The position numbers and the translations under genes were made by a program. Under the pieces are notes generated by a model that was not told where the DNA came from, made no database searches, and worked only from the letters and a program-made list of their open reading frames with translations. Shown here in pieces: positions 5,101 to 51,504 of a DNA stretch of 64,000 nucleotides. Within the stretch, counting starts at the first letter, position 1; the number at the start of each line of letters is the position of its first letter. Source of the DNA: Paragordius varius (lineage: Eukaryota > Animalia > Nematomorpha); assembly GCA_964247055.1 (NCBI GenBank), contig OZ176053.1, positions 11,594,001 to 11,658,000 of the forward strand, given 5' to 3'.

Positions 5101-5769
5101 ACTAGCCTGATTTTTAAATATAAAAATATATTATATGAATATATTTCTTCGATATAAATTTGATGAAGAAAAAACAACTACATTAGATGTTAGTTTTGAA
5201 ATTTTAAAAAAATTAAATTGAATATTTTGGCGCAACTTAAGTTTTTGATATACCTTAATTTCAGGGAATGATAAACTTTCTGAATAAAAAGCCCATCAGT
5301 GTCTTTACATATTGTATATGCATTAGAGGTTATGTAAAAAACTATACGTACCCGCTATACAAATTACCTATAAATATATTTTTATATAAAGCTTTAACCA
5401 TTTTATTTGCGCGATAGTATGGGTCACATTTATATGATTTAGAAAATAATAAATCTCTCATTTACCGGATAATGGCCTTTTCTAGGCATATATTTCACGC
5501 TCAAATGCTATTTTTTACACTTAATAAATATTTTTTGAGTATTTGATCATTTTTGTAACCTCAATTTTAATGATACAAATTTTGAAATGAAGGATTGTTT
5601 AACAAATAGTAAAAAAAAATAGAACTCATTCAAACCGCAATATATCTATATAATACGGTAATCATTGGACTGAGGCTCATAACTATAGAATGATATATGA
5701 TTGATAACCATTCATTTTTGGATACGCCGTTTTGTTTAAATTTGAAAATCAAGCCTCAAATAAAAAAGA

Positions 5770-6905
5770 AAAAGGTAAAATATAATAATTTTTGGGTACG
5801 GAAATATTTGGGATCAATGAAAAATGACTGTAAAAATCTTGATTAAATGAAATAAAAGGTAAATTATGTTATTTTTAGGTTACACACAAATTTTGGATAA
5901 AATCATATAAAATAATTTCATAAATTATGATGATTGATTGAGAAATCGGCATATATATAAAAAAAGGTAAAATATAATATTTTTTTACGATTTTTTTAAA
6001 TATGAATGAAGGAAATGATTTAAGGCTTCAGGTTAGAGCCTTAATATGAGTAAAAAAAGGTAAAATTTAATATTGTTTAGGTTATGGAATTCGGAATATT
6101 ATTGAAATTATCTAAAGAATTAAGAAAGGTCAAATAAATTGATTAAGTTTAATAAGAAAGACGAGGTAAAATATAATATTTTTAGGTTAAGGCAATATAT
6201 TTTAAATATTATTATCAATGAATATTTGTAAACTTTTGAAGAATTTAACTGATCAATTATTGGTAACAGCATCGAAATGAAAAAAAGGTAAAATTAATAT
6301 TTTTTAGGGTACGCAACCATATTTTAAACATCATCAAATAAAAATTTATTGGTCGTTAGGTGGATCAAACATTAATAGGAAATAAAAGGGAAACTCTAAT
6401 TTTTGAGGATATGGCAATATCTTATATATTAATGAATAAAATAATTCAATTTATTAATTGATTAATAAAGGGATCAAGCAACGATAAAAAAGGCAAATTA
6501 TAACATTTTTTAGGTTTTGCACATATATAATATAATTTAACCATATAATGGGTAATGATGGAATCGGCATTTATATCAAAAAAAAGGTAACATATAATGT
6601 TTTTTAGGTCATGGAATATTTTATATCAACTGAAAAAGTTTGAAGCATATGACTGTCGTCAATAAATGGAAGAGCTTTTATATAAAATATTATATTTGTT
6701 ATTTCAACAAATTTGTAAATTAAATAAAATAACTTAAAGAACTTAACTGTAATATATCAATCGAGCATCGATTGATAAAAAAAGTAAATTATAACATTTT
6801 TTAGGTTGCACACACATATATTTTTTGAATAATATGAATTGAAATGGCTACAATTGAGAAATCTACACTTAAATGAAATAAACGGTATAATATAATGATT
6901 TTTAG
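5770..6905 (+). repeat. Degenerate ~100-bp tandem array (~11-12 units), each unit carrying an AAG|GTAAA...TTTTTAG|GT cassette
   Basis: Cassettes start at 5775, 5859, 5967, 6060, 6166, 6288, ~6388, 6493, 6587, 6784 and 6885. Spacing is 84-122 nt, with one double interval. Confidence 0.85.
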
Positions 6906-7057
6906 GTTACGCAAATATTTTGTAATATTATCGAAGTAAATTTTTTAAACAATACAGATAAAAGTTCAACTTGTTTAATAATCAAAGGGTTTCTTTCTTT
7001 CAAAACCTCCAAGTGTCGAAAACGACAATGGATAAATCAATCAATATGAAAGAAAAA

Positions 7058-8050
7058 GTACAATATTGATTTTTAATTTTAGTGTATTTATACTAAAATA
7101 TTTGAAATAATTGAAGGATATAATAAAAATTCTGACTGTTGATCCTTATTGAAAGAAAATGTGAAATTAATAACAACAAAAATCAGAATAATTATACAAA
7201 ATTAGAAAAAGTAAAAAAAAGCCCGATGCCAAGAAAAAAAGGTATTTTAAATTTTTAGTAATCAAAGAAGCGTTTCAAATACAATTTCAGAGTAAAAATT
7301 AAATTTGAAAAAGATACCTCGATCTTGGCAGAAATGGATTTACAAGAATTTTAAAATCGTTTGACATAAAACCGAACTCGAGGTTAATTTTGTTTTTAAA
7401 GTAATAATTAATTATTTTTACCAAATTATTTAAATGATAATATATTTTTTGAATTTCAGAGAAAACGTATTGGTCCGTATCCTGTTATTGACTTATAAAA
7501 AATCTATCAAATATTAAATATGGAATTTGGTTAAAACAATTTTAGCAGAATATACCAAAACGGTACATAAAAAATGGTTAGCAATGTAAATTAGACAATA
7601 TAAATAGAAAAAACTATAAATTAGCGATTATAATTTATCATAGCCTAATTTCAGGATCTAAACCGATGTACAGCAAGCTAAATAATGTCCATAATTTAAA
7701 ACTTCTCGTGATGGGTTTTATTGTATAAAATTTTTTGATGGAAGATTATTATGATTAGAGATGCTGGCCTCCAATATTTGTTAGAAACGAAAGCTCCACA
7801 TAAGAGCTGTCAAAAATTACGCAAACAGAAAAGTTTAATCTCCCCTCTTTATAATTTAGATTAGAGATATATGAAAAGAAGAATACGTAAATCGAACTGA
7901 TGAAAAATTATGTGTTACTCGATTCTCAAAAGGCAAAAAAAACACATGATTATATGTAACATTTTTAAATATCCGAAAATAAATAGATGGAAGATTATAC
8001 ATTAATTTGAAAATTTTGCAAAATCGATAATATATATATGCATATTTCCA
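7058..8050 (+). pseudogene. Possible decayed spliced gene with LRR-like motifs
   Basis: Splice-like GT...AG segments at 7058-7082, 7242-7258, ~7383-7459 and ~7562-7655. Translated pieces KRYLDLGRNGFTRI and LNNVHNLKLLVMG resemble LxxLxLxxN, but there are many in-frame stops. Confidence 0.25.
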
Positions 8051-8226: not shown

Positions 8227-9352
8227 TCAGGAAAAATCTAGACCAATACCCATTTGTAAACCGGGATACAACCTTTAAATATATTAATAATTATATAAAA
8301 TTAAATTATTAGAAAGTATGGCCTTTTACCATGATGATGCTAATACCAAAATTAATGTTGTATTGAGAATTCAACACAAAACATTTTTTCAATTATCTTA
8401 GACAAATTTGTTTACTTAGATTTCATGAATACATAGTAAATCTTGATTTGTAAAACTCACAGTTATATATTCCCAAGCATTGATAAATTATTCAATAAAA
8501 TCGAATATTATTTTAAGATCTAAAAAAAGTATTATAAAACCCTTTTTATAATCAATAAAAAATAAAATTATGATGATACTTGTCAGTTGCATGAGCTTTG
8601 GTAAATAAGCAATAATTGAATTCACATCTTGCCATATTACCAAAATTAAGGACTAACCCAACACCAGCACTTATACGCAAATGATCATATAAAATGGACC
8701 AAACTTTCCCTTTCATTTCGGACAAATTTATGGGTGACATTGAATCTTGATCAATTAAAAATTATATGAAATATATATTATTATGTTTCCATAAATAATT
8801 ATTCCATTAGGCTCGAATAAAGGGCATAGGTATAACAATATTTTCACTTGCATACATAAAATATTACTAATAAATAATTTAATTAATATACGTTAATGAC
8901 TGTAACTGCTTATAGTGATAACTAGGCAAAATCTTTAAACTTTGTATAAAATTAGCATAATAAAAACGGATAAAACGTAAATTTAATATTGAAAAATGGG
9001 AAATTTTATATCAATTGTTTTTGTAATCTATTTTAATTATAATGCTAAAACCAATTTGAAACAAACGGTTAAATTCATTTTGTTTGGTTTCAACCGGATG
9101 TCAAACACATAAATAACTTACTGATGCATATTATTATTTTAATAAAAACCTTGGGCCTTTCCTCCAATAAAGTTACCGACAGAACCTGCAGTAACATAGG
9201 CATGTAAACGAAGAAATTGAGCTAAACCCATTTGAGGCCTTTTGTGTGGCACTGGCAGCTCCTTCGAAACGGGACTAGAGAAGGAGGGAATGGGTGCGTA
9301 TAAATGCAATCCCAATTGCCAAAAAGAATCTACACCTAAAGCATGGCCTAGG

Positions 9353-9392
<40 letters not shown>

Positions 9393-12300
9393 AAAAATAT
9401 ATTTCAGAATTTGTTTGCGATGCAAATATTACAATTTAATCATCCGAAAAAAATTAATAAACGAATATGCTACCAAAGAATTTAAAAATGAATGATGATT
9501 GCAATAATTAAAAAAGAAATAAACGCGCCATATATTTATAGAGTTAATAGTGCTAAATTTTAATATATCATTTATAGATATTATCATTTATGAAAAACTT
9601 TAAAAATTATACCCATTTATGTTTCATCGCTGAAAATTATTTAAAATTTATTTCTTTGCAACTGTATATGTTTTCACTAACATTAAGAATATACTTTTTT
9701 TACTTTTTTGTCAAAAAAACTCTAAAAGATTGACTAAAAGTTAATGCCCAATAAAATATTCATTGGGGTGTATCTTTTAACGCCTGAGTAATATTAATTT
9801 AAACAAAAAACAAAATATAATAAGACAAGAGTAAATGGTTCTTTTGATTACAAAATTTTCAGCAGAATTCCGTGTTTTAGGCAAAAAATTACCTACCGTC
9901 TTCATGTGGCCCCAAACCGCCGAATGTAAAGCCTCTAAAAGAGAGTGGTCCACCCAAATAAAATTTGTCCATCATATTTAGACCATGACGTTGATCGAAT
10001 GGATGATATGACATGTTTGGAGATTTTGGGTCCTTATTCCCATTCGATAAAGAACTGTCGTTTTGATCACCAGAGACATCCTCCTTATTGAGTGAATCGG
10101 ATGACGGACCAACATTGGATGAGAGTACAATGAAACCACCATTCAATGTAAACTGTAAAACCTGAGATTGCAAAAAAATGTGTTAAGAAATTTAATTGTC
10201 AGCAATAATCAATCAATTTTTACGATAAGTTATAAATCTAAAATAGATATTATACTTGAATATTATAATTGGCTTATAAAATGGTGTTTATGAAAAATAA
10301 AATATTTAAATAATTTACATAAACTACATAATGGTTAATATTAAAAAAACATTGGATAAAAAGTATAAATCTAAAACCGAATTGAATATAGAGGGGATAT
10401 TGTAATGCAAAGTCCCTTGCGTTTTAACAAATGGTAGAAGACCGGTCATGCTATCAAAATTATCAGTTTTTAAGAGTTGTGAAATATGGTTTGTGGGTAT
10501 GCTAAATTCTTGTTCCACCTTTAAAAGCGTCCCATAATTAGGTAAAAATGCATTGTCCCTGGTGTCGTAAGTTAGATTATGCTAAAGTAAATATATATAT
10601 ATATATTGATATATACTGTTAAAAAACATGAAATTTTAAAAGGAAATATTTATTTTATTTAAAATATTGTACATCGCCCTCTACATATTTCGCTCATCTC
10701 TCAGGTAATATATGAATGGCGTGCCAACTGATTGTCTTATATGGAAACCATAGGTCAAGCCATTAGAGCAGATGCAAAAGAATTTTTCATCGGAGCGATT
10801 TTTAAGTATATGACTGATTTTGTTGTATGAGACGGAGCATTGCATGTAGCAAAATCATTTTGCCATGTTTTATGACCGATTCCGATCATTTTTTGATAAT
10901 AAAATGTTGATATTAACCATTTACTGGCGATAGCGTTGTGTATTAACGGTTCTTGAGCCCCATCAGACACAGAGCACAATCTTTTGCAGCGACTTGGCAT
11001 TGGTGCTGATCGGCTTGGCAGGGTTAACACCAATTTCTCCGCTGATCATAAGGTCATTTTATAATACCCGTTCCAATTCAATGAAAACTTCTTTTCGTGA
11101 TGTTGAAGCAGGATTTTACGAGTCCCTTTACAATTTTCGATATGACTCTAATTTAAATTGTGATAAACCTTCGTGTTTATCAATTTTATATTGCCGAAAT
11201 TAGAAAGAAGAGGCAGAAAAGTGTACAGGATTGATATTCAGAGGATGGATATCTATTGATCGTTTTTTGGAATATATGTAATGCATATGCCGATTGTTTT
11301 TATATTTAAGTTGGGTCATCATCCCACAATTCAAGCCTTTTATCGTTTTATTTATGTGTTCAACCAGAAAGCCCACAGTAAATCAAATCACATAAATTGA
11401 TTTCGCCTAAAATAGCATCTTATTTTTAATATTCAGTTATATGTCGAATTTCATGCTGACTTGTGGTTTATTGCATGATAAACAAAATCGGGTTTGAATT
11501 AGCGTACTTTTAATTGAGCTCTTTTATAAACCATAATATATTATGATACGCCTGGTATATATATGTGGGAATGAATAACATAATAAAAACTAGCATTTGT
11601 AACAATTAATAAATTTAATTAGCCAACACACAATATATTTTTATTTAAAATTCAATTATTATGATTATTATTTTTGCAAGAAATACAATAACGCTTATTT
11701 TAAGACATTGAAACGATAAAAAATTAAATAATGCATATAATTATTCGCATAAGCATAATGTAATAGGAGCGTATTTGTTCTTATTTGTATCCCTTATACC
11801 CTAAAATCTTTCTTACTAAATTTAATTATATTTATTTTATTCTTAATAATTTTATAATTTACTTTAAATGCAGTTTTGTATGATGATCCAAAATGAGTCT
11901 TGATCACATCAGGTAGCGGTCTTAACGTATCAAAAAAGGATGGCTTAGCTTCACGGAAAGAACCTTCCACACCAAATGCATATGAGAGGTGTTTGCTAAA
12001 AAAGCTCTATAATTCATTCAAAATTGGTTAACAACTACATAATACTTTAGATTTACATGTTAGCCATGATTTTTCAACAGAAAATCCATTTTAGGTTTTC
12101 CATATTTATAATTTTTTGGTCGATTGGTTCTGATTTCGATTTCATGTTTAAAATATATGAATTGTTAGCCCAAAAATATAGACATAAAAACAGCAAGCTA
12201 ATTTTATGTGCTATGCTTTTAAATTTATTTTAAAAAACAATATCAAAAAATAGGATTATAATCAAGAGAAAAAAACTTCCTCAACCCTTGAAACTATTGA

Positions 12301-13903
12301 AAACCGCGGTTCCAATTCTAAATTGTGAAACTTTTTTTAAAAAAATGATTTTTAGATTTATAAAAGGTTTAAAAATGGTTTGCAAAATTAATCCTTTTTA
12401 ATAAATATTTGGTATAGTTTTAAAAAAATATTAAATTTGAAAACGGAATTATTATTGACATTAGATGTTCAGATAACACCTGCAGTTTAAAATTATGACA
12501 ATTTTATTTAAAATTATTGTAACCCGATTTTACAATAAACAACGAATACAAAACATTCAATTGATTTACCATGTCTTTTGTAAACTAACATCATTTAACG
12601 TCTGAAAAAATGATTGTTTTATTTTGGATTAAATCAAAAAACGTGGGTGTTTTAAAAATGAGAACCCAATAGTATAAACTAGATAATCCTAATTATGTCG
12701 TAATTTTGTGACTAAAGTGTTATCATATTAAAACAAAAATTCTATTTTTACGGATTAAATATTTTTTAAAACATATATATTCAAACAATATCCAATACTA
12801 TTGATCGTACAATTGATGAAAACCCCTACACACACGTTTAATATTGATTACTAATATTGAAAAAAAGCACATTTATAGTCTCTTGTTATGAAGGTATAAA
12901 ACACTCGCCGCCCCAGAAATGGGAGTTATTATTAAAAAAATTGTCCAGTTAAGGGGAGTCCAAAACAATTTACCACCCATCAAAACTACTTACTTCTCTT
13001 TTTAACATTCCAGGTCCAGAATAATAAAAAAAAATTATGGTTATTGAAATAAAATTTATTACTATCTGATGAATTTATCAAAATTTTAAGAATACTCCTA
13101 TATGCCAGATATTCCAAATAACAAAATTATATTCCTAATTAAATCGGTTTTACATTCGAATATATGTATTTTAAAAAAATATTTAACCAGAATGATATCA
13201 ACTATATAACAAAAAACACATATGGTTACGTTTAACATAAGAACTAAGCCTTTCTCATCTTTCATTAGATTGGTCCATGGATATTCCAAAACATGGCTAA
13301 AAGCATTAAGTGATGCGCTATACATAATAAGGGATATATATTGTTTTATAGGATATATAAAAGTTTAAGATGGAACCTTGATAGAAATTTACCAAAAATT
13401 AGTGGTTTCTGCAAAGTCGCATTAAATCCCAAATGTTTCTGTGTATTTATAGATGCTGTAAAAGAAAATTGTTCACATTCCCCAGCAAAATTATTAATTT
13501 TTAAAAATGAAGACTAAAATAGATATTTATAGTACAAGTGATGAATCATAATTTCCAACTAGGGTGTTTAAGCCTGCCCCAATAACTCCGGGTTCTTTTA
13601 ATCGATATTCAATCATATATCCATCTAAAATAATTAATATAAAAAACCTTTATGCTTGGATAAAAATGATTGAACATCTGAAAAAGTTCCCAGTCGCCTC
13701 AAATTATCATCAACTTCGGATAACAATAATAAAAACTAAATATAATCAAAAACTACTTCAGTGTAATCCTTGGTCCCTATTAATTTACTTACAATTTTTG
13801 TCAAAAATTTGGAATTGGTTCGTTTGATACCACTAAAATCTATTCGATTTATAGTAATATCCTAAAAAAATATATAAAATCATACTTTTGAATCAAAAGG
13901 CAT
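8227..13903 (-). CDS. SAMM50: Sorting and assembly machinery component 50 (Omp85/BamA-family mitochondrial outer-membrane beta-barrel), 515 aa
   Basis: Exons (minus): 13903-13886, 13861-13757, 13735-13648, 13624-13536, 13513-13377, 13317-13230, 12006-11863, 10581-10378, 10161-9897, 9347-9150, 8745-8580, 8272-8227; total 1548 nt, all introns GT-AG, phases consistent. Motifs: POTRA DITINRIDFSGIKRT..RRLGTF, NTLVGN, YPWTNL..EKG, HNLTYDTRD..LP.YGTLLKVEQE, DKFYLGGPLSFRGF..GGLGP, LGVDSFWQLGLHLYAP, SAGVGLVLNFGNMARCEFNYC, and beta-signal LQMGIGLDF at the C-terminus (TGA). The start ATG (13903) and the exon 5 donor are the least certain points. Confidence 0.95.
9355..9388. repeat. (AT)17 microsatellite
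   Basis: Direct reading. It lies a few nt upstream of the SAMM50 exon 10 acceptor (..ATATTGCCTAG|GC on the minus strand). Confidence 0.95.
10610..11555 (-). mobile_element. Decayed mariner (Mos1-like) DNA transposon in SAMM50 intron 7
   Basis: TA|CCAGGCGTATC at 11557-11545 resembles the Mos1 TIR. Minus-strand pieces ELWDDDPT..KQSAYALH, ENCKGTRKILLQHHEKK, KPISTNAK.LQKIVLCV, NAPSHTTKSV and terminal GDVQYFK* follow mariner transposase order. Many stops and deletions. Confidence 0.8.
13514..13535 (-). other. 22-nt spliceosomal intron (SAMM50 intron 4)
   Basis: GTACTATAAATATCTATTTTAG; phase 0; in-frame TAA; removal gives GNYDSSL|SSFLKINN, gap-free against GNNEGSM|VLGLKLPN of vertebrate SAMM50. 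Confidence 0.9.
13625..13647 (-). other. 23-nt spliceosomal intron (SAMM50 intron 3)
   Basis: GTTTTTTATATTAATTATTTTAG; phase 1; retention shifts frame and gives a TAA. Confidence 0.9.
13736..13756 (-). other. 21-nt spliceosomal intron (SAMM50 intron 2)
   Basis: GTAGTTTTTGATTATATTTAG; phase 0; ends in an in-frame TAG; removal restores collinear spacing to RRLG. Confidence 0.9.
13862..13885 (-). other. 24-nt spliceosomal intron (SAMM50 intron 1)
   Basis: GTATGATTTTATATATTTTTTTAG; phase 0; contains an in-frame TGA; joins MPFDSK to DITINR. Depends on 13903 being the start. Confidence 0.75.
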
Positions 13904-14495: not shown

Positions 14496-17441
14496 TAGGG
14501 TGACCAGACGACCCGTTTTTTCACACTTTGTCCCGGCTACGTTTTTGAAATGTCCCGCTTTTTCACGGTTATATAAAAAAAATTTAAAACATTTAATTTA
14601 ATAAAAAATTTATTTTTTTATTCGTTTAAATTTTTTATCATTAGTTATCTAAAAATCTATATCAATTTTGAATTATTTTTTATCTTTAAATCAAAAATAT
14701 TTATTTTTTTCGAATTTATATCATATGATTATACACTTTGCTTCCTACTCCTACTGAACATTATCAAAAAGAATTAATACCACAAATCGGTAACTTATAC
14801 TTTTACTCCAGGAAATTAATGTAATAAAATATTTTTTTATACTAATATTTTAGTTATATTACCTGCCAACATCATCAAATAGACAAATTAATACCACAAA
14901 TCGGTAGCTTATACGTTTACTCCAGAAAATTAAGATAATATAACATTTTTTTATACTAATATTAGGTTAAAAATATGAGTACTAAAAGAGGTTGTAAATT
15001 TAACGATGAATAACACTTCAATTCAAATTGGGATATCTAAATACCCCAGACTAAACTTAAATTAGGAATTTTAAAAAACTAGTGAAGGAAACGGTCCCAA
15101 TTCAAATCTATGCTTCTATCCTTATAAAAATTATATAAATACGCCAAAATATCTAAATAAAATTTTGTTTTGACCATGTCAAACTACTTCGACGCATTTT
15201 TATTTTACAAAATTTTTCGCAAAATTTCGTCTTCATTCAATTTTAAGGGTAATATTAAAGCTAATTTTTTATTAAAATACATCTAACATTGATAGAAATA
15301 GAAAAGGCAGATTTGATATTATTTTTCAATTTATCATTGCACACATGTCACGCTAATTTTTTGACTTTTGGTTTTAGCTTAAAATAAGTAATACCAGGTA
15401 TTTTTAAATAAAAATTTTTATATATTTCGGTTTATCAATGTTAAAAAAATGCAAAATTTTACCATGGTTTTGATTCCTTCCATATTTTCTATTGAATGTA
15501 ATTTTAGACAGGCCTGGAGTATTCTACCTTAATTTGATTTGAAGCACTAAAATGAATGTGTTGTATCTAAATGTTAATGAAATAATTCACTTGTTACATG
15601 TTCTTAATGCGAGGGGGAAATTACCCTAGTACATGGCGGCAAGCATGGTATTACAAAGCATCTGGAAACATAGAAACATAAAAATGTTTAGATATGGCTG
15701 CATCATCTTACAAAATAAGCGATTTTTATAGAAAAACCGCTTTTGGAGAGGAAGAAAAGAATTTGACACTAGCCGAAGGCGTATTATCTTTTCATGCCGT
15801 TAATCACAATCATTCCTTTATATCTATGGATTGTACCTCACAAGTTATTAATACCTTATTCAATAAAAAATTTACATGTGCCCGTACAAATGAAGCCATT
15901 GTATGTGTCCTTTCGCCACATGCATTTTCTAAAATACAAAAAGATTTGCTGAAAATTATTTCATATCGCCATACTCTGATGCATCAAATCACAAGGAACC
16001 AAAATTATTCCCACTTTAATAAGACATTTTGATTCAGAAACCGGAGTAAAAATTAAATATTTAGATTTTATTTCTCTACCCGGTCAAAATTCTGACTTAA
16101 TTTTTACTTCAATAATGTTCTAGAAAAAATTATTAAAAGACAAAATCATCGCATATTGCGCTGACAACACCAATACGAACTTCGGCGGAAAGGTAAGGAG
16201 AGAAACAAAAAATATTTTTCATATAGATAATCTTAATCAAAACATTATTGGCGTTAGGTGTGCAGCGCATATAATACACAACGCTATTCAAACAGCTTCT
16301 GATTTGTTACCCCTAGATGTGGAAAATGTAGTTGTTAAAATATACTATTTCAATATATACACGGTACGCGTTGAAACGCTTAAGGAATTTTGTGATGCAA
16401 AAGTTCAATATCAAAAAATGCTTGGATACTGTAAAACTCATTGGATCACTCTTCTGATAGCTATCGAAAGAATTTTAAAAATGTATGATCCTTTAAAATT
16501 TTATTTTTTTATCACAGGACAAATGTCCTACAACTTTGGAAAAGTTTGTTAAAAGTGATTCTTCAAAAATATGGTTAGAGTTCCTACTTAATCAAGCTTC
16601 TCTCTTTGAAAATGTTATTAAATTGATAGAGACAAAACTTCGGCAATCGAAGTAGCCAATGAAGTTAGTAACCAAAAAATCCAATGTCAAAAAAAATTAG
16701 AAAATAATTACCATTAACCATCCGCAATATTATAAATAAATTAGAAAAACAAGGCCTAATAAATCGATAAGATATACTGCACCATATAAAATATACAAAC
16801 TGTAAGATTTTTTGGAAGACTGGACGGTGCAATCAAGGAATCGATCATTTTCATCGGATAATTAAAACCAGAATTTAATTGGTGCGATATAAAAATCTTT
16901 TGATTACATCTGGATCTCCCAAATATTCCCAAATAATCTCTGGAGTATCATTAGTTAAAAAGTATATAATAATGAAAAGTTTAAATATAAACAACAGAAA
17001 TATGCAGTAGAAAAGAAATGGTTAGAATTCATCATTTTGAACCAAACTATGTTCCATACAATAATATTTTAAAAATGAGGAATTTGCACTATCTTTACCT
17101 GGAACCAACGTTGCTCTTGTTTTTCCCACAGTAAATCAGGTGTGGACATCGGAAAAATCAAATTTAAATGTTGCTTTAAAGGCCATTTTATCTGTCAAAT
17201 ATAATTTGACAGATTCTTGTGATAACTTCTACAATATTTTAAAAAATGATGACACTCTGCTAAAACATTCACTCAAATAAATTTACCAGGGAATAAAATA
17301 TTTTTTTATATTTATAATGAATTTGTGTTAAAAACTAATAAATAAATAAATATTTTGTATAAAAATTTTTGGTTCCCCCTTTCATGCCTCCCCTTTCTCA
17401 GATTTGTCCCGCTTTTTTCCTCAAAAAATCCGATCACCCTA
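14496..17441 (+). mobile_element. hAT DNA transposon, copy 1 (defective)
   Basis: TIRs TAGGGTGACCAGA (14496) and ..GATCACCCTA (17441). 8-bp flanks GAAATAGG / GGTATAGG (6/8 match). Subterminal GTCCCG motifs. Transposase pseudo-ORF from ATG 14975 to ~17280, including track ORFs 15694-16032 and 16304-16552. Confidence 0.9.
15014..15573. mobile_element. piggyBac-type MITE copy 1, inserted into the hAT transposase ORF
   Basis: CACTTCAATTCAAATTGGG start; right flank TTAA (15574-15577). The empty TTAA site is present in hAT copy 2 (52208-52211). Confidence 0.85.
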
Positions 17442-20698: not shown

Positions 20699-21399
20699 TT
20701 AACCCTGCGCTATTGTATTAAAAATAAACCAGAATCGACAAATATTAGTGTACATACTATAGTGGCGTATTTTTTATGGCGAAATATTTCTAATCCATAT
20801 GTAACATGTGGGACTCAATATCAAGTGTGTTCTTTAAATTTGAATGATCAAAGACATATTCATAAATTTTCTAATTGGTTTTACATTTTATTATTTAAGG
20901 ATAAAGGATGGAACGTTAAACAATCCTTATCTATTACATTAGATAAGGTGTGGGAATATTTTCTTGCGGAAAAATATAATAGTGTCGTTTCATGTTTTGA
21001 AGAACATTACTTTTTACCGATTACGCCAAATTGCAATGATTGGCTCTACGCATCGAAACACATAATTAAAATTATAAATCCAAGTAATGATTTTATAATT
21101 TAAGAAATTTTATATTTGTCTATCTGTGATCTATCATCTGGTTCTGTCTTGGTTTATGCAGTTGATAGTGGTATTGATTCCTTATTGACCAATGAAAATA
21201 TTTTAAAGAGTAAAAGACTGAACAATAAATAATTTGAATTCTACTTACTTTTATGCTATTTCACAAATTTTAAATGTTATTACATAAATTTTAATTATTT
21301 TGCTGATAATAGAACATCTTCATAAAGATATACTATTTATTGATCCATTAGAATTTTTGTATATTTGCTGATTTTGGAAATAAAGATTATATACCCAAT

Positions 21400-22000
21400 T
21401 ATTATAATAGCAAAGATCGTTATTTATTGCTTTTTCGATATATTTTTTCCAGTTTATTCGATTGTAAGCGAGTGCTATTAGCTGTTTTAAAGAAAGATAG
21501 GTTTCTTTGGTTAGGTTTTCGATCCAGCGCATCTTGCAGCGTCCATGTTTACTGGATCCTTCGACCTTGCCTGTCATTTGTTGGAATTCCAATTCATTAG
21601 CTCTGGCAATGTGACCAAAGTATGATAATTTCATTTTGAAGCACATGCCGATCAGGTGTATCTCTGGATTTGTCAAGGATTACGGTGTTCTTTATTTTGT
21701 CTTTCCAGGTGATTTGTTGTATCTTCCGCCAGCACCACATTTCGAAGGCATTAATGTTTCTTTTGTCATCATCTTTATTGTCCAACTTTCTGACGCGTAT
21801 AGCATACTAGGGAATATTAAGCATTTATTATATTGTTTGAGCAATGCATTCATTTAATCTACAAAGGCATATAATTTTTTAACGCACTGATTTTGATATC
21901 GTTTTAACTGATTTAAGTATCTATGGAACACCATACTTTTTATATATTGTTTTCGCATAGTATTTAATCAAATTTATGACACATCATTCTGGATTTTCTA
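21400..22000 (-). mobile_element. 5'-truncated RTE-clade LINE fragment
   Basis: LIFPSMLYASESWT..KRNINAFEMWCWRKIQQITW and KLSYFGHIAR..GKVEG..GR..MRWIENL (track ORFs 21597-21785 and 21320-21676). Confidence 0.85.
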
Positions 22001-24539: not shown

Positions 24540-26212
24540 CATTTCGATTCAAATTTGGGTATCTTACCCCACACAATTAAAAACTACTGAAAGAAACGGT
24601 ACCAATTTAAATTTATGCCTCTATCCCATGAAAATTTATATAAATCAATTAAAATATCTAAATAAAATTTAGTTGCGGAAAAAATTCCGTATCAAACTAC
24701 CTGGATGCCATTTTTATTTCACATCATTTTTGGTAAATATCATATTTCATTTCTGCTAAAATTAAGTTTACTTTTTTATCAAAATCACATTTAACATAGA
24801 TATAAACAGAAATAGTGGTATATTTCGCATTATTTTTACATTTAGATTATGCACACATGTCATGTTGGCTAAAGTTTTACCTTTAGGTTTTGCCTCTGAA
24901 TAGGTAATATCAAGTATTTTTAATTAAATTTTTTATTATATATCGGTTCATTAATGTTATATAAGAGCAAACTTTTTCCATGGTCAATTTATTCCATATT
25001 AAATTATTTGATAAACAAGCCGGGGATGGATGGATGGATCTCTGTTGTCAAGGGGTCCCTTGGCATCCCGTCGTGACGGGGTTTAGGTGTTTGATCATTG
25101 CATTGAAGGATTTTTTTGTTTAACCAGTCCCCGGCTTTTATGTTTTTGGACTGTAGGTCTTGGGTAATGTTTTTGTCCCATGTTATTGCAGGACGACCAA
25201 CTCTGTTTTGTTTGTTTGGCTTAAGGTTTGTTATATTTTAAATCCAATTATCGTTATCTAATCTTTGAATGTGACCGTAATAGCCAAGTCTACGGATTTG
25301 AATATATTTTGAGATTGGTAGGATTTGTTTATCATGAGAGATTGTTCGCTTAAATGTATTTATCATTTTTTGTTCCATATTATCCAGCATATTTTCCTGT
25401 GTTTTACTTATTTGCCATTCGCAAGCATAAGTTATAGTGGGTCTAACGCCAATTAGGTATATTTTGTTTTTTGTTTTTGTAGATATGTGTTTATTGGTAA
25501 ATATGTATTTATATTGGTTGTATCTACCCCAACCAATTCTTTTGCGATTTTTGATGGCTTCAGATGAACCTCCTTGAGCGGAAATGGTATCACCAAGGTA
25601 GGTAAACTTTTGTACTTTTTGAATTTCGATGTCACCTATTTTAAGGTAGGTTTCAGCTTTTATGGGTGGAATATATTGTTTGGATAGAGTACATGGGGGG
25701 CATATATAATTATTATTATTCCATTTAATCCCGAACATGGTTTGTGTAACCAGTATTGACACTGGATGGAGTTTAGTCCTACATTTTTTAGGCATGCGCG
25801 GCATGGGTATTTGATTTGATCGGTCTTTTTGTCGCCTGTTATCATAACCTTAGTTTTTTGAATGTTGATTGTGAGACCATGTCGCTCAAGGCAGGTTTTC
25901 CAGAGTTTGAACTTTTGACTGAGTTCGTTTAGATTTTCTGACGTTAACAATAAATCATCAGCGTAGATGAGCTAAGGAAGACCAGTACGGATCTCATCAC
26001 TGATGGTGTCTATTATTATGGTGAATAGAAGGGGGCTAAGAACAGAACCTTGGTGTAGTCCTGTTGTGATGTGGAATGGAATTGTGTACCCGAAATGTGT
26101 GTTAACACAGGTTTTACTGTTATCATATAATAACTTTATTGCATCTATGCGGGGGTATCTAATTACCCCAATATGAAGCTAAGGATTAAAATGAATGCGC
26201 TGTATCTAAGTG
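24540..26212. mobile_element. piggyBac-type MITE copy 4 (opposite orientation to copy 3), split by a LINE at ~25024-26150
   Basis: Starts CATTTCGATTCAAATTTGGG, breaks at AAACAAGCCGGGG (~25025), resumes GGGGTATCTAATTACCCC (~26152) and ends AAGTG|TTAA. Confidence 0.8.
25024..26150 (-). mobile_element. 5'-truncated RTE-like LINE with an (ATCC)n 3' tail and a Cys-rich PHD-like insert in the RT region
   Basis: GLHQGSVLSPLLF..IYADD..GLTINIQKTKVM, then YPCRAC..NSIQC..WLHKPCSGL..YICPPC, then FTYLGD.IS..GGS..AI..R. (GGAT)4 at 25024-25039. Confidence 0.88.
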
Positions 26213-29193: not shown

Positions 29194-32100
29194 ATGGATT
29201 TAAAATGCAATATAATAATAGAGGGAATGACTTGCGCCTCTTGTGTAAATTCAATCGAATCTCATCTTAAAAAATTAAATGGTTTTGGTTTTATCATAAT
29301 TTTAGGCATTAAATCCGTAAAGATATCATTGATGATGGGAAAGGCAGAAATTATTTTCAAAAACTCCGATAATTCTCGATTAACGCCCAAATATGTAGCT
29401 GATTATATAACCGATATGGGTTATTTGGCTAAAGTCGCTCCTGAAACTAATTATAATATAAATACTTCGAATTCCGAACGCATGCAAATTGAAATTTTAA
29501 TATATGGAATGACATGTTCATCCTGTGTTAACCAAATTGAATCAACCGCTATGAAGCTTCCTGGAGTGGAAAAAGCTACTATTGCTTTAAGCACAAATAA
29601 GGGAATTTTTCTAATCGACACTGCAGTGACAAACCCTGAAAAAATAATAATGTCTTTGGATGTAATTTTATTATTTTAATTTATTTATTTTAATAAACTT
29701 TGCGTATAATTCATTTAAGCAATACAAATTTTTTTGTAAAATTATATTTATTCGTTTTAGGAAGCAGGTTGGAAATGTGAACTCATTCAAACAAAAAATG
29801 TATGGATAACTTTATTAAATTATAGATTAATCACACAAAAAATATTAAATCCTTGAGCGTCCCTAAAACTTCGAAAAGACCCAAAACATATCGGTAATTT
29901 TCCAACTAGCAATCGTTGTGCCAATTTATTATAAAAAACTTTTGAAATAATCACGTAAAATTGTAAATTATGCTCATGTTTTTATTTACAAATAACATTT
30001 TATGGTAATTATTGAATGGTGACCGTGAATAATTCATTTTTTTAGCGTTTATAATAATTCTTTTTTTTTACTTTTTTTAACATTTGTAGCAATACATCAT
30101 TGCAAATAGCTCAACACGAAACCGCCGTTTGGAAACGTTCCTTTTTAATTTCGTTAGCTTTTGGACTTCCTGTCATAATTGTTATGTTTGTGGGCATGAT
30201 TAAAGAGGGCGGTCATACTCATCACATGAACAGTAATTTGCACATTAAAGCCATTTTGCCTGGCCTTAGTTTGGATAATTTGTTGCTTTTTGTCTTTTGT
30301 ACACCAGTGCAAGTAATTTTATTAGAAATATTTAACTTTTTTATTATTAGTAGTAGTGTTAAACTATTTAAAAAAAAGTTATAAAATATATGTTTTTCCG
30401 CTTTATGTAAATTATTTTTGTTTAATTTTTTAAAATGCGGAAGGAAATCTGCCCCAAATTATAGAAGTTTGTTATATGACAATTAATATACATTAAAGGA
30501 TTTACATATAAAATACACTCTACAGCACATTTTTCTGCCAGTCTGGTTTTTTGCATTCTCTTATCTAACAGTAAATCTGAATTAAAAATTATGATTCTAC
30601 CAAAGAATTTTTTATAATTAGATTTTTTTGTTTATGCGCTCTCTTTATCAAAATAATAATAATTGTACACAACAAATTCCCATTAATATAACATTCTAAA
30701 GTGTAAAAACTCTATAAAAAGCTCTCTAATAAGTTTTACATAATAGTTAATATTTGAAATAGGAAGCGACAAACCCGCGAAGCGGGATCGTTTTTTTCAA
30801 TTATATTATAGAAAGTGGACGTAAATAGCTGAAACTTTATGTAGATGGCAATAAAAATCAATATAACACAAAATAGTTTTTATGATTAAAACATATGTTT
30901 ATTTATTACTTTTATGTTATTAAAAACAGCCATTTTTAATCTCAAAAATTACCATCTCATCATAATAATTGTTTTCTTTCGAAGGCTTATAATTTAAAAT
31001 TTTAAGGCTTGATATGAAGTAATAGGTTTTCTTGATTTTTATAACTATTTTGAATAAATTTACAGTTTACTATGCATTTTAGTAACCATTAGGGATAATA
31101 ATTTTAATAATGAGTTTTATTACAACTTAGAGCTTTTTCAAAGATTTTTATTAAATTTTATACTAATGTAACCCTAATAATTATATCAATATTGCATGTT
31201 CGAATTGATTTGTCTGTGAAAATTTTTGATTTATTTATGAGTTGAGAATTTTGACCATATAAATACATTTAAATTTTACAACAGATTAATTTAAATGACC
31301 ATTCGAAAGATTCAGTAGTTTGCGCTCTTTCGAATGTGATACTTGGATATATATATTTAAAACTGTTTATTTTAAAAATTTCGAGTTTGATGTTAAATTG
31401 TTCATTGAAGTTGTCCCAAAAGGAACGTCTCTTGTAGTTGTTCATAACGCTCTATTATGAGTGTCTACAACTAATTGTGTTTAGTTGTTTTCAGCTAGTT
31501 TTATGGGGTCTGTCCGCTTTAGGTGTGGTGTCCACTTTGTAATGTAGCATGTGGATTTTAGTATGTGGGGCGGATTTCTAGGATATATGTGACCTTACAT
31601 CCTAACCTACCCATTTGGATGATATCGGCTATTGATTTTATTTTTAGCACAGTGTGGGAGTCATGGTTCGTTGTGTAATTATTAAACTTCTTGTTTGGGA
31701 TCGTTCAAATATATTGTGTTTAAAAGTTTGCGTTCTGATTGAAGTAATATAGCGTTGAGCGTGTTTGTCAGAACCCAATGTTTCCGATCCGTATTTTAAC
31801 ACCAGTTGAATCGCTTTGGGTAAAAATATGGTATATTGCGAGCTTAATATATCTGTTTAATAGAATAGTTTTCGACGACTGCAATTTTTTCAGAACTGAG
31901 CTATGCGATGCTTGACAATTTCTTAGAGTCCTCCACCTGCTTATACCTTATCTCCCAAATAAACAAAGTCAAGTGTCTCAATCCCAAACTTCCAAACTTG
32001 TTGAGATAACGTAATTAGGAATCGGATCTCTCAGCCTTTTTGGCTTATAAAATTTAGGTAATTTACTGGGAGGGTTAAGAGGTTAGTACATTTTTTATGT

Positions 32101-47020: not shown

Positions 47021-48208
47021 TAATTTTGTTTATTTTTTAACATAAAAACTTTATAAATATAAGAAAATATTTTATTATTTGGTATATTTTTTGTTTGAGT
47101 GAATGCGTTTTAGCAGATTGTCATCATTTTTTAAAATATTGTAAAAGTCTTCACAAGAATTTGTCAAATTATATATGACAGATAAAACGGCCTTTAAAGT
47201 TTCAACATTTAAATTTGATTTTTCCTATGTCCACACCTGATTTACTGTGGAAAAAACGCGCTCAGTAGCAGCGTTGGTTCCAGGTAAAGATAGTGCGAAT
47301 TCCACAATTTTTAAAATATTATTGTATGTAATATAGTTGGCTTCAAAATGATGAAATATTTCCAACCATTTCTTTTCTACTTATTTTTCTTTTGTCCATA
47401 ATTTAAGTTTTTTAATATTGATATATCTTTTAACTAATGATACTTCAGAAAAAAGATCATTTTCTGAAAGATTACTTTTTGAGAAATTTTGGGAGCAGAT
47501 ATTATCAAATGATTTTTGAACATCGTACCAATTAAATTCTGATTTTATGTTATCCAATGAAAATGATCAATTTCATTGAATTGCGTTGTCCGGTCTTCCA
47601 AATAATCTTTACAGTTTGTATAAAACATTTTTATATGGTACAGGATATCTTGGCGATTTATTAAACCTTGTTTTTCTAAATTATTTATTGTATTGCGGAT
47701 GGTTAATGGTATAAAATTATTTTCTAATCGTTCTTGACATTGTAATTTTAGGTTACTAACTTCATTGGCTACTTCGATTGCGGAAATTTTGTCACCTTCT
47801 ATAAATTTAATAACATTTTGAAAGAGAGAAGCTTGATTATGTAAGAATTCTAACCATATTTTTGAAGAATCACTTTCAAAAAAAATTTTTAAGTTGTAGG
47901 ACATTTGTCCTGTGATAAAAAAAGATTTTAAAGGATCATACATTCTTAAAATTTTTTCGATAGCTGGCATAAAAGCTAAACAACGAGTTTCACAGTATCC
48001 AAGCATTTTGTGATATTGAACTTCGGCATTTTCCCAGAATTCTTTAAGCGTTTCAACACGTACCGTGTATATATAAAAATAGGAATAAATTTTAACAACT
48101 ACATTTTCCAAATCTAGGGGTAACAAATCAGCAGCTGTTTGAATAGCGTTGTGTATTATATGCGCTGCACACCCAACGCCAATAATGTTTTGATTAAGAT
48201 TATCTTTT

Positions 48209-51200
48209 GGTTGGTTGGTTTTTCCTAAGTCGTAAACGACTTTTTGGATATAGTTTTAACTATTTCTTTCCATTTTTTTCTATCTTTAACCGCTATATTG
48301 AGCTCTTTCAGTGTCATTTTGGTCTCTTCTTTTATCATATCCAACCACCTCATCGGTGGTCGGCCTCGTTTCCTTTGCCCTTCTACCTTCCCAAACATTG
48401 TATCTTTCTCCAGAGAATTCGATCGCATGACATGACCAAAATATGTTAACTTTCTTTTTAGAATTATCTCCAGTATGTTTGTTTTAGGTTTTATTTCTGA
48501 AATTAGATTTCCATTCTTAATTTTATCCTTCCAGGTGTATCCTAGCATACTACGCCAGCAGCTCCTTTCAAAAGCCATGAGCCTTTCTTTGTCCCTTTTT
48601 CTGAGAGTCCAACTCTCACATCCATATGTGGTGACCGGGAGAACAAACAGTAGAGTAATCTTTTTTTGGTTACCACTCCTACGCTTATGTTTTTCCAAAT
48701 CTTTATTAATTTAGTCATCGCTTCTCTACCCAATCCTATTCTCTTTCTGATGTCAGGAGTTGAAGACCCATCCTCTGAAATTATTGCGCCCAAAAACGTT
48801 AACTGTTTAACTATTTCTATTTCTACTCCTTCTATTATAATTGTAGGCTTTTTTCCTGTACATAATATTTTGGTTTTGTTAGGATTAAGCCTAAGACCAT
48901 ACCTCAAACTTTTCTTTCGAATCTCTTCAATCAATTCCTTCAAATCATTTGCACTTTCAGCTATAAGAGTGGTATCGTCTGCAACCCTTAAATTATTGAT
49001 TGTCCTCCCTCCTATTCTTACTCCAATATTTTTACCATCCAACTTCCTCATTATCATTTCTGTGCACATATTGAACAGATAAGGGGATAAGCAACACCCT
49101 TGTCTGACTCCTTTCAAGATTGGTATTTCGTATGTGTCCCCCGCTGGTGTTCTAATAATCGCTCTTTGTTTTACATACAGAGAGCTAATCAATCTTATTA
49201 ATTGAGACGATACCCCTACTAACTTTAATGTTTCCCACAAGGAGTCATAATTGAATCGAATGCTTGTCTGTAATCAATAAAACACATGTATAATTCTTTC
49301 TGGAACTCTTTTGATGTTTCCATTATCCTTCTCATGTTTGAGATATGGTCTCTTGTGCTTTTTCCCTGCATAAATCCGGCTTGATTTTCTGGTATTTCTG
49401 TCTGTATGATACTGTTCATTCTGTTTTGTATTACTTTTAGTAAGACCTTACTAGCGTGGCTAATAAGAGATATGTTCCGATAATTCTCGCATTGGAGTAC
49501 ATCTCCTTTTTTATATATTGGGAGATATACAGATGATGTCCAGTCGTTTGGCCACTCACATGTTTCCCACACCTTTTGACATAACTGGTGTAACTTTTCA
49601 ACGGGAATAGCTTTTATGAACTCTATTGGGATATTGTCTAATCCCATCGCTTTGTTGTTAGGAATTTGTTTTAAGGCTAATTCAACCTCCTCTCTTAATA
49701 TATCTGGATCACGTTCTTCTTCTTTTAATTGCAACACCTTTGCTTGAGGAGCCTGATAGAGTTTTTGGGTGTATTCCCTCCATCTTTCTCGTACTTCTGT
49801 TTGTTTGCACAATATGGTGCCATTCTCTTTTTTAATCTTTTGTGATGATATAAAAGGTTTATGAGTCATTTGCTTCAGTTTCTGGAACATTGGTTGCATT
49901 AATCCTTTTTTGTTATTTAATTCCACTTCCAGACATTGTTTATTAAGAAAATCTTCATACCTTCCTTGTTTGTCGTTGAAATTCTTTGTTATATAATTTT
50001 ACCATTTTATTATCACCTCTTGATTTAGCTTTTCTCCTCTTTTCTGCTATCTCTATACTCTTTTCTGATATCCATTTGTTATCTTTCCTCTTTATTCTCT
50101 GCACTTTTTCTTTTGCCACTTCATTAACAACATTTTTTATCGTTCCCCATAATTGTTCTGAGCTACATCCATTGTCCAATCTTCCTAATCTATCTTTGGT
50201 TTCTGTTCTAAAACTATTTGGAATGTTCCGAGTGTCATATCTGTATATCTGTTTAACCTTATTTTTAATTATTTTAAGTTTGATTTTGGTTATTATAAGC
50301 TCATGATCGCTAGAGCAATCGCTGCTTTTGCTTGTTTTGGTATCGATTATAGAGCTTTTCCATTTTTGAGGACACATTATGTTATCAATTTGATTCTTAT
50401 ATTTACCACATGGAGAGGTCCATGTGTATAACCTCCTATTGTGTTGTGGAAACCATGTGTTGGTTATCATCATCTCATTTTCTTGACAAAAATTGATCAG
50501 TGCTTCCCCGGCCTCGTTTCGTTCTCCCAATCCATATGGCCCGACTATTTGATCTACTCTACCTCTACCAACTTTACTGTTCCAATCCCCTCCTATGATA
50601 ATCATATCTCCTTTCTTCGTTTCATCCAAAACTATTTGCAACGTTGCATAAAAGTCCTCTATGTCTTCTTTGGGAGCGTTTGACGTAGGAGCATAGACTA
50701 CTATGTATGTAAATTTAAGTGGCTTGGCATTCAGCCTAATACTCATGATTCTGGGTGTATATGGTGTATAACTAATGAGACTTTTATTTAATTTGTTTTT
50801 TATTAATACTGCAACGCCTTCAGATTTCTGGTCATCTCTCCCCGATCTTAACAATGTATAATTTTCGTTTTGTACTTTCGCGCTACCTTTTTGCTTGGTT
50901 TCCGTTAGACCCAGTATATCTATGTTCAATCTTTCCATTTCCTTTTCAATTATCACCTGTTTGGTTGATGTTAAGGAACGTACGTTCCAGCATCCAACTT
51001 TGAAAAGTCTTGTTAAGTTCATATAGTAAAACTATTTTTTGGCAGTAATAAACGAGGGTGGTTTGCCATTGCCTTCCCTCTCACTTACCCTCTTTACAAA
51101 AAATAAATATCTAGAATAATTATTTAAGAGTAATCTTTATAAATGTTGTTAATTTGGATAAATTATAAATATTGATATTTCAATCTGTCTGGCAATCCTA

Positions 51201-51504
51201 AAAGAAAATATAAAGCAATTATGGCTAGGCTAGTAAAAATAAAATAATTAGGCACCAAGGAGTAGAGAAAAAAAAAGAGATCTGTATAACAATGATTTTT
51301 GATGACTTAAGAATTATGTTACTCTTTAAATTACATACTTAGCATACAAATAAAATAAAAACTCTACAAAACAAAGAAAAAGATTAATAATTACTAAAAG
51401 GAAACATATTTTTTAAATATATTTATAGTATATAATAAAATAATACTATCCATGAATATCTTGCCGCTTTCAATCACATGGTTTCATGCATGAAATACTC
51501 ATTA
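48209..51504 (-). mobile_element. Full-length RTE-clade LINE (APE endonuclease + RT), frameshifted
   Basis: 14-bp TSD TAAGATTATCTTTT (48195-48208 and 51505-51518). (AACC)3 3' tail. ORF pieces 49955-51022 (WNVRSL, LGLTETK, GDWNSKVG, QIDNI, SDH), 49225-49926, 48542-49240 (GVRQGCCLSPYLF, LRVADD) and 48225-48698. 5' UTR of ~480 nt with GGAAGGCAATGGCAAACCAC. Confidence 0.96.

Follow-up and report, generated by a model that had tools for sequence, protein, structure and literature searches.

A 64,000-nucleotide (nt) stretch of the genome of Paragordius varius (Nematomorpha; GenBank assembly GCA_964247055.1, contig OZ176053.1, positions 11,594,001 to 11,658,000), here called the window, carries on its minus strand a gene for SAMM50 (Sam50), a mitochondrial import protein of the outer membrane that belongs to the Omp85 superfamily. 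Within the 5′ part of this gene, which encodes the POTRA domain, four segments of 21 to 24 nt most probably constitute genuine U2-type GT-AG spliceosomal introns, and we put the probability of this interpretation at roughly 0.9. We infer their excision from the RNA from the reading frame and from the intron positions in orthologous genes. The four segments would represent ancient metazoan introns, reduced in this lineage to nearly the physical minimum, and the other seven introns, all farther downstream, would have stayed at 59 to 1281 nt.

Read on the minus strand, intron 1 (24 nt, phase 0; GTATGATTTTATATATTTTTTTAG) lies at positions 13885-13862, intron 2 (21 nt, phase 0; GTAGTTTTTGATTATATTTAG) at 13756-13736, intron 3 (23 nt, phase 1; GTTTTTTATATTAATTATTTTAG) at 13647-13625, and intron 4 (22 nt, phase 0; GTACTATAAATATCTATTTTAG) at 13535-13514. 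All four start with GTW and end with WTTTAG (GTATGA...TTTTAG, GTAGTT...ATTTAG, GTTTTT...TTTTAG, and GTACTA...TTTTAG, respectively). An earlier note, made from the letters of this DNA, had proposed introns of these lengths and with these ends, and its coordinates and lengths proved exact to the base. Its description of the segments as almost entirely A/T agrees with their GC content of 9 to 19%, compared with 28 to 36% in the adjoining exons. The note had further claimed that removal of the segments is obligatory, as each contains an in-frame stop or shifts the frame. Indeed, intron 1 contains an in-frame TGA and TAG, the last codon of intron 2 is an in-frame TAG, and introns 3 and 4 are frame-shifting; keeping a single segment created two stop codons for intron 1, one for intron 2, 13 for intron 3, and nine for intron 4. 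With the segments removed, the protein aligned essentially without gaps to its orthologues, as the note had also stated. Four GTW..WTTTAG motifs on the coding strand within 390 nt compare with an expectation of 0.16.

To build the gene model, the open-frame GT..AG pair with the best alignment was chosen at each junction, guided by the SAMM50 protein of Gordionus sp. m RMFG-2023 (Montseny horsehair worm, Gordionus montsenyensis; locus L001; XP_065324547/8, ENA CAK9292756). The resulting gene (8227..13903, minus strand) comprises 12 exons with a stop-free coding sequence (CDS) of 1548 nt, including the stop codon, and encodes 515 amino acids (aa). Exon 1 (13886..13903, 18 nt) encodes MPFDSK from the first in-frame ATG, as there is no earlier one after the upstream stop at ~13987, and with only 6 aa it has the weakest homology support of all exons. 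It is followed by exon 2 (13757..13861, 105 nt), in which the POTRA domain starts (DITINRIDFSGIKRT...), exon 3 (13648..13735, 88 nt), exon 4 (13536..13624, 89 nt), and exon 5 (13377..13513, 137 nt). Intron 5 (13318..13376, 59 nt, phase 2) separates these exons from exon 6 (13317-13230). The remainder, with introns 6 to 11 and exons 7 to 11 at 8273..13229, contains exon 7 at 12006-11863, exon 8 at 10581-10378, exon 9 at 10161-9897, exon 10 at 9347-9150, and exon 11 at 8745-8580, and exon 12 follows at 8272-8227. Introns 6 to 11 measure 1223, 1281, 216, 549, 404, and 307 nt, so that the range of 59 to 1281 nt given in the earlier note for the other introns of the gene is correct. None of these long introns contains repeats found elsewhere in the window. 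Two candidates were discarded during model building: a 28-nt intron after exon 6 (GTAACC...TATAG, ~13229-13202), which lacked an orthologue match and whose donor pairs with an acceptor 1223 nt downstream, and an ‘FWGG’-like piece near 12900, which represents a chance resemblance.

The identity of the gene, SAMM50/Sam50 as originally proposed, is supported by Omp85/Sam50 matches and by a full-length alignment to the Gordionus protein XP_065324547, with 46% identity over 451 aligned columns. Three exon pieces matched Pfam Omp85 at 19.6 to 23.3 bits each, just below the whole-protein cut-off of 24, and downstream exon pieces matched Sam50 structures in the PDB. Pfam gave no useful match for the short N-terminal exon pieces, and their identity is therefore based on the alignment to orthologues. 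The model has the expected layout of an N-terminal POTRA domain and a C-terminal Omp85 β-barrel with similarity to Sam50 over its full length, it contains the C-terminal GLQMGIGLDFS signal, and it is 27 to 33% identical to SAMM50 of a mite, a sea star, a sea urchin, a moth, and a tapeworm. A protein search with the 97-aa exon returned 14 matches, only one of which, that of Gordionus, was a full-length Sam50; the search revealed neither a SAMM50 protein of the same species nor a relative closer than Gordionus. Similarly, a word-indexed protein search with the Gordionus protein revealed no other nematomorph Sam50. The nearest protein among billions is thus that of Gordionus, and 46% identity marks it as a fairly distant nematomorph relative. 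A metazoan-type SAMM50 with its closest relative in Gordionus argues for an animal origin of the gene.

The four introns were also tested by comparison of their positions with those in other animals. We placed the Gordionus protein exactly onto its own genomic DNA to read its intron positions, and SAMM50 of the sea urchin Diadema antillarum (L002) and of the mite Tropilaelaps mercedesae (L003) was mapped likewise. The Gordionus gene contains 11 introns in phases 0, 0, 1, 0, 2, 0, 0, 0, 1, 1, and 2, the same series as in the window gene, and the alignment columns are identical for eight of the 11; the other three are 1, 3, and 15 columns off and lie in short or gap-rich stretches. Diadema has introns of the same phase at the positions of window introns 1, 3, 4, and 5 to 11, that is, at all but intron 2. 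Intron 1 coincides, within one alignment column, with Gordionus intron 1 (39 nt) and Diadema intron 2 (798 nt). Intron 2 shares its column and phase with Gordionus intron 2 (42 nt) and with the single intron of Tropilaelaps SAMM50 (1048 nt). Intron 3 has the phase of Gordionus intron 3 (10,955 nt) and Diadema intron 3 (710 nt), which lie 3 to 6 columns away in a gap-rich loop. Intron 4 agrees in column and phase with Gordionus intron 4 (228 nt) and Diadema intron 4 (945 nt), and its junction reads GNYDSSL|SSFLKI in the window and GNYDNSL|SSFLKI in Gordionus. The same agreement of column and phase holds for the 59-nt intron 5 and its counterparts in Gordionus (511 nt) and Diadema (8902 nt). As these positions are common to Gordionus, sea urchin, and mite, they predate the bilaterian radiation, and the tiny introns would therefore be ancient introns that shrank. 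The argument from orthologous positions also served to validate tiny introns in myxozoans (Hadjez et al., PMC13644364).

The Gordionus SAMM50 gene (L001, 3001-36209) spans 33 kb and includes introns of 10,955 and 13,119 nt. Like the window gene, it has A/T-rich introns, the two 5′-most of which are the shortest, and each of its 5′ splice sites is limited to GTW. In contrast to the window gene, its shortest introns measure 39 to 42 nt, and its introns 3 and 4 are 10,955 and 228 nt long, compared with 23 and 22 nt in the window; a collapse to less than 30 nt is thus not seen in Gordionus for SAMM50. Isoforms X2 and X3 of the Gordionus protein stop before the last exon and lack the C-terminal GLQMGIGIDFS strand, which is present in isoform X1 and in the window model.

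How such short introns could be recognized is suggested by the signals that they retain. All 11 SAMM50 introns, the four tiny and the seven longer ones, run from GT to AG, and the GTW 5′ site is the same in the long and tiny introns of the gene and in the Gordionus introns. In each tiny intron, the sequence reads as a run of 3 to 7 T residues ahead of the AG, and one or more candidate branch A residues occur at positions −6 to −12, a sample (n = 4 to 5) that is below the size needed for a consensus. The simplest reading of a shared GTW site, TTTAG ends, and an A at −6 to −12 is ordinary U2-type splicing. We propose that an ordinary spliceosome would recognize these introns across the intron (intron definition), using a reduced GTW 5′ site, a branch A ~6 to 12 nt upstream of the AG, and a short U-rich run ending in TTTAG, with the 3′ signal placed directly at the AG as in nematodes. 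A U12-type identity was considered and rejected for introns 1 to 4, as neither the RTATCCTT 5′ consensus nor the TCCTTAAC branch site was present in any of them, and likewise for intron 11, which starts with GTATCATC but whose Gordionus counterpart starts with GTTGAG.

A second, unrelated gene in the window supports the interpretation of the segments as introns. The gene for an ATP7-type copper ATPase (plus strand; ATG at ~29194, exons to ~43700) contains a 24-nt GT..TTTTAG segment at 29282-29305 within the first HMA domain. The segment is in frame and stop-free, and it corresponds to an exact 8-residue gap relative to those HMA domains of human ATP7B whose alignments span that point. A frame-restoring 26-nt GT..AG candidate is located at 29800-29825, an intron of ~97 nt lies between the two tiny candidates, and the gene also has many introns of hundreds to thousands of nucleotides. 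In both SAMM50 and ATP7, tiny introns thus occur at the 5′ end and longer ones follow, and the TTTAG 3′ end is common to all five tiny introns (four in SAMM50 and one in ATP7). It is conceivable, at a level that we regard as speculative, that hairworms possess a discrete class of ~21- to 26-nt introns at the 5′ ends of genes, derived by lineage-specific collapse from ancient introns, one of which measures 10,955 nt in Gordionus. Such introns would be located beside kilobase-scale ones in a genome rich in transposons and would be served by a dedicated short-intron route. As a corollary of such a class, which standard aligners and gene finders would mishandle, part of the low BUSCO completeness published for nematomorph genomes could be an annotation artefact.

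The earlier note had gone further and suggested that introns of ~22 nt are too short for canonical assembly of the spliceosome and point to a modified or dual-mode one. A related form of specialized splicing would be a U2AF-independent SPF45-like route. SPF45-dependent, U2AF-independent splicing has been described for short human introns, and the length of 21 to 24 nt, far under the usual animal minimum, the clustering at the 5′ end of both genes examined, and the common TTTAG could all be taken in its favor. Nevertheless, we consider this explanation unlikely, as the reduced GTW 5′ site is common to introns of both size classes, long and tiny. Moreover, many animals handle short and long introns together, by intron definition and exon definition, respectively, so that their coexistence is normal. 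Finally, a conventional U2 suffices for introns of the same size or smaller in myxobolids and Stentor: myxozoans with 22- to 27-nt introns keep a conserved U2 branch-site region and U2AF1 and U2AF2 (PMC13644364), and Stentor has a functional conventional spliceosome and introns of 15 to 16 nt (cited in PMC13644364). The tiny introns described here thus do not require a spliceosome of a modified or dual-mode kind; conventional U2 and U2AF persist in published lineages whose introns are just as short. An Rfam scan of the whole window gave no match and no snRNA gene, and the window contains no splicing-factor genes.

At the DNA level, contigs of a deep sequencing run (X1; word depth of ~500) span introns 1, 2, and 4 without gaps, intron 4 with 0 mismatches as well, and no insertions or deletions are listed in 13514-13885 in the run contigs compared with the window. 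Intron 1 is also present without gaps in X6, a low-depth DNA run that carries the label of another organism and is 99 to 100% like the window. An assembly error, which the earlier note had named as a potential refutation, is thus unlikely. In the contigs of both X1 and X6, position 13881 differs from the window (C to A on the plus strand), which turns the G at position +5 of intron 1 into a T without affecting the GT of this intron. X1 further differs from the window by three residue-changing exon differences (Y39N, V84I, and S216P; positions listed as 13765, 13586, and 11886) and two synonymous ones. These differences point to appreciable polymorphism or to differences between individuals. 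Runs X5 to X9, filed under five other organism labels, carry near-identical pieces of the SAMM50 locus, possibly owing to co-sequencing of host and parasite, mislabelling, or close relatives.

Several points weigh against our interpretation. X1 may represent the assembly's own sample, so that the check is not fully independent, and no listed X1 contig spans intron 3. As exon 1 has only six codons, the main support for intron 1 comes from the start codon and from its conserved position. The bare splice motif is by itself weak evidence, since GTW..WTTTAG segments of 21 to 26 nt are only weakly enriched across the window (54, compared with 40 ± 7 in dinucleotide shuffles). Searches for spliced RNA were uniformly negative: k-mer searches of sequencing runs for the locus found only DNA-like runs and no RNA run, two RNA-labelled runs of the same species (X10 and X12) contained nothing on SAMM50 even at 90% likeness, the protein database contained no transcript-derived SAMM50 of the same species, and a gap-tolerant scan of metagenome contigs gave 0 matches to the junction of exons 4 and 5 in either its spliced or its unspliced form. 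Run X6, whose exon-enriched look had suggested RNA, covers the intron interiors and was therefore classified as low-depth DNA.

The lack of detected expression or splicing, together with the three residue-changing differences in the X1 contigs, would be compatible with a decaying or nonfunctional SAMM50 copy, in which the segments are small insertions or unspliced junk and no intact protein is made. This is very unlikely. All four segments are bounded by GT..AG and lie at positions and phases common to Gordionus, sea urchin, or mite, and simple composition arithmetic gives a random insertion a chance of only ~0.2% of having GT..AG ends. Furthermore, the remaining 1.5 kb of CDS is free of stops across 12 exons, and the window showed no further copy of SAMM50.

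Another alternative is that junctions 3 and 4 are spliced as ordinary introns of 53 and 46 nt, through another acceptor at junction 3 and another donor at junction 4. Such introns keep the frame open, nematode-like short introns typically have lengths of this order, and introns of 39 and 42 nt occur in the same gene of Gordionus. We examined all GT..AG pairs located no more than 30 nt from each boundary. Only one solution at junction 1 keeps the frame open, and the 18-nt alternative at junction 2 scored lower, so that introns 1 and 2 have no alternative of the ordinary kind. The 53-nt intron deletes 10 residues (DGYMIEYRLK) and scored 23 points lower, and the 46-nt intron deletes eight (VGNYDSSL) and scored 55 points lower; both peptides have conserved counterparts in the alignment to the proteins of Gordionus, mite, sea star, and sea urchin. 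We thus regard these longer introns as scarcely tenable. The earlier note had named a better exon chain that dispenses with the tiny introns as a finding that would overturn them, and the enumeration gave none: intron 1 is unique, and introns 2 to 4 are the best choices.

Lastly, indel artefacts of assembly or long reads, or somatic programmed elimination of the DNA instead of splicing, could be suspected in an AT-rich, low-complexity region that is prone to long-read indels and for which RNA searches came back empty, but their likelihood is negligible, as the X1 contigs cross introns 1, 2, and 4 without gaps, chance errors would not be 21 to 24 nt long and bounded by GT..AG at orthologous intron positions, and the boundaries do not have the TA..TA form of ciliate internal eliminated sequences, which were also rejected because X1 and X6, the two DNA data sets, both contain the segments.

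The surroundings of the two genes agree with the description of this genome in the earlier note as rich in transposable elements, which is fair for the window. A non-LTR (long terminal repeat) retrotransposon with endonuclease and reverse-transcriptase domains lies at 47500-51100 (47.5-51.0 kb, minus strand), and repeated open reading frame fragments resembling reverse transcriptases or transposases, some in two copies, occur outside the host genes at 15682-16549 (plus), 51473-52170 (minus), 21323-21806 (minus), 25007-26178 (minus), and 55119-55319/59809-60009 (plus). Tandem Repeats Finder reported nothing at a score of ≥40 at 5500-7100. The window is uniformly AT-rich, with a GC content of 23 to 35% in 2-kb steps, in agreement with the Gordionus genome, which has a GC content of 26.9% and consists of 64% repeats (bioRxiv 10.1101/2023.06.26.546503).

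For a long time, animals were considered to lack introns of less than 30 nt. In a study that compared 51 genomes, animal introns below 30 bp were reported only in myxobolid myxozoans (Henneguya salminicola, Thelohanellus kitauei, and Myxobolus spp.) and in the dicyemid Dicyema japonicum (Hadjez et al. 2026, MBE, PMC13644364; for Dicyema, also Lu et al. 2019, PMC6736024), and further lineages with introns of <30 nt were predicted (PMC13644364). The list of short-intron lineages in the earlier note was therefore incomplete, as it lacked the myxobolid cnidarians, now the animal record holders. The SAMM50 introns, at 21 to 24 nt, fall below 30 bp in an animal nuclear gene, and they resemble those of Myxobolidae and Dicyema in several respects: GT-AG introns of ~20 to 27 nt at conserved ancient positions between conserved exons, a 5′ site reduced to ~‘GTa/GTW’, a candidate branch A a few bases before the AG, a parasite as the host genome, and a tendency of tiny introns to adjoin each other. 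However, Myxobolidae and Dicyema have median introns of 22 to 27 bp (mean of 38 bp in Dicyema) and small genomes of ~67 to 75 Mb (two genomes), whereas in the window seven of the 11 SAMM50 introns measure 59 to 1281 nt, the tiny ones lie at the 5′ end, and transposon fragments are numerous. The shift of intron lengths across the genome to a median under 30 bp, which characterizes the ultra-short class in animals, is not seen in the introns of SAMM50 and ATP7. The 3′ end differs as well: all tiny introns of the window, admittedly a small sample, have a clear TTTAG, compared with a bare ‘AG’ in Dicyema and in non-myxobolid myxozoans (PMC13644364).

The lineage of the window belongs to the Ecdysozoa (Nematomorpha), for which we found no report in the short-intron literature, and the word ‘intron’ is absent from the text of two preprints on nematomorph genomes. 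Short introns are numerous in nematodes, the sister phylum; their U-rich 3′ end leads straight to the AG (UUUUCAG), and they lack a strong consensus at the branch site. The TTTTAG ends in the window look like a variant of this signal, and the nematode intron mode of ~47 nt (C. elegans type) is roughly twice the length of the tiny introns. Outside animals, introns of Paramecium (~25 nt), of Stentor (15 to 16 nt), and of the Bigelowiella nucleomorph (18 to 21 nt) are similar in size range, GT-AG ends, and A/T richness. Unlike the window, where tiny and kilobase-scale introns are mixed in one gene, those ciliate and nucleomorph genomes have uniformly tiny introns.

Judged by its sequence, P. varius would be the third animal lineage with introns of less than 30 nt, inside the Ecdysozoa. 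Its particular features are the occurrence of tiny and kilobase-scale introns in one gene, the clustering of the tiny ones at the 5′ end, and the difference between 23 and 10,955 nt at one orthologous position. The two parasitic animal lineages with introns of <30 nt described previously have small genomes with introns reduced overall (PMC13644364). If our interpretation is true, extreme shrinkage of introns is possible without an overall compact genome, with introns of 22 nt and 1.2 kb in one gene, and P. varius would offer a natural system for the lower limit of intron length, in which one spliceosome acts across a 50-fold to 500-fold size range. Introns of 21 to 24 nt do not exceed the smallest size that common RNA aligners and gene predictors accept by default. 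If such defaults miss tiny introns, the genes that carry them would appear broken or missing in annotations, a point of relevance to the low gene completeness published for nematomorphs.

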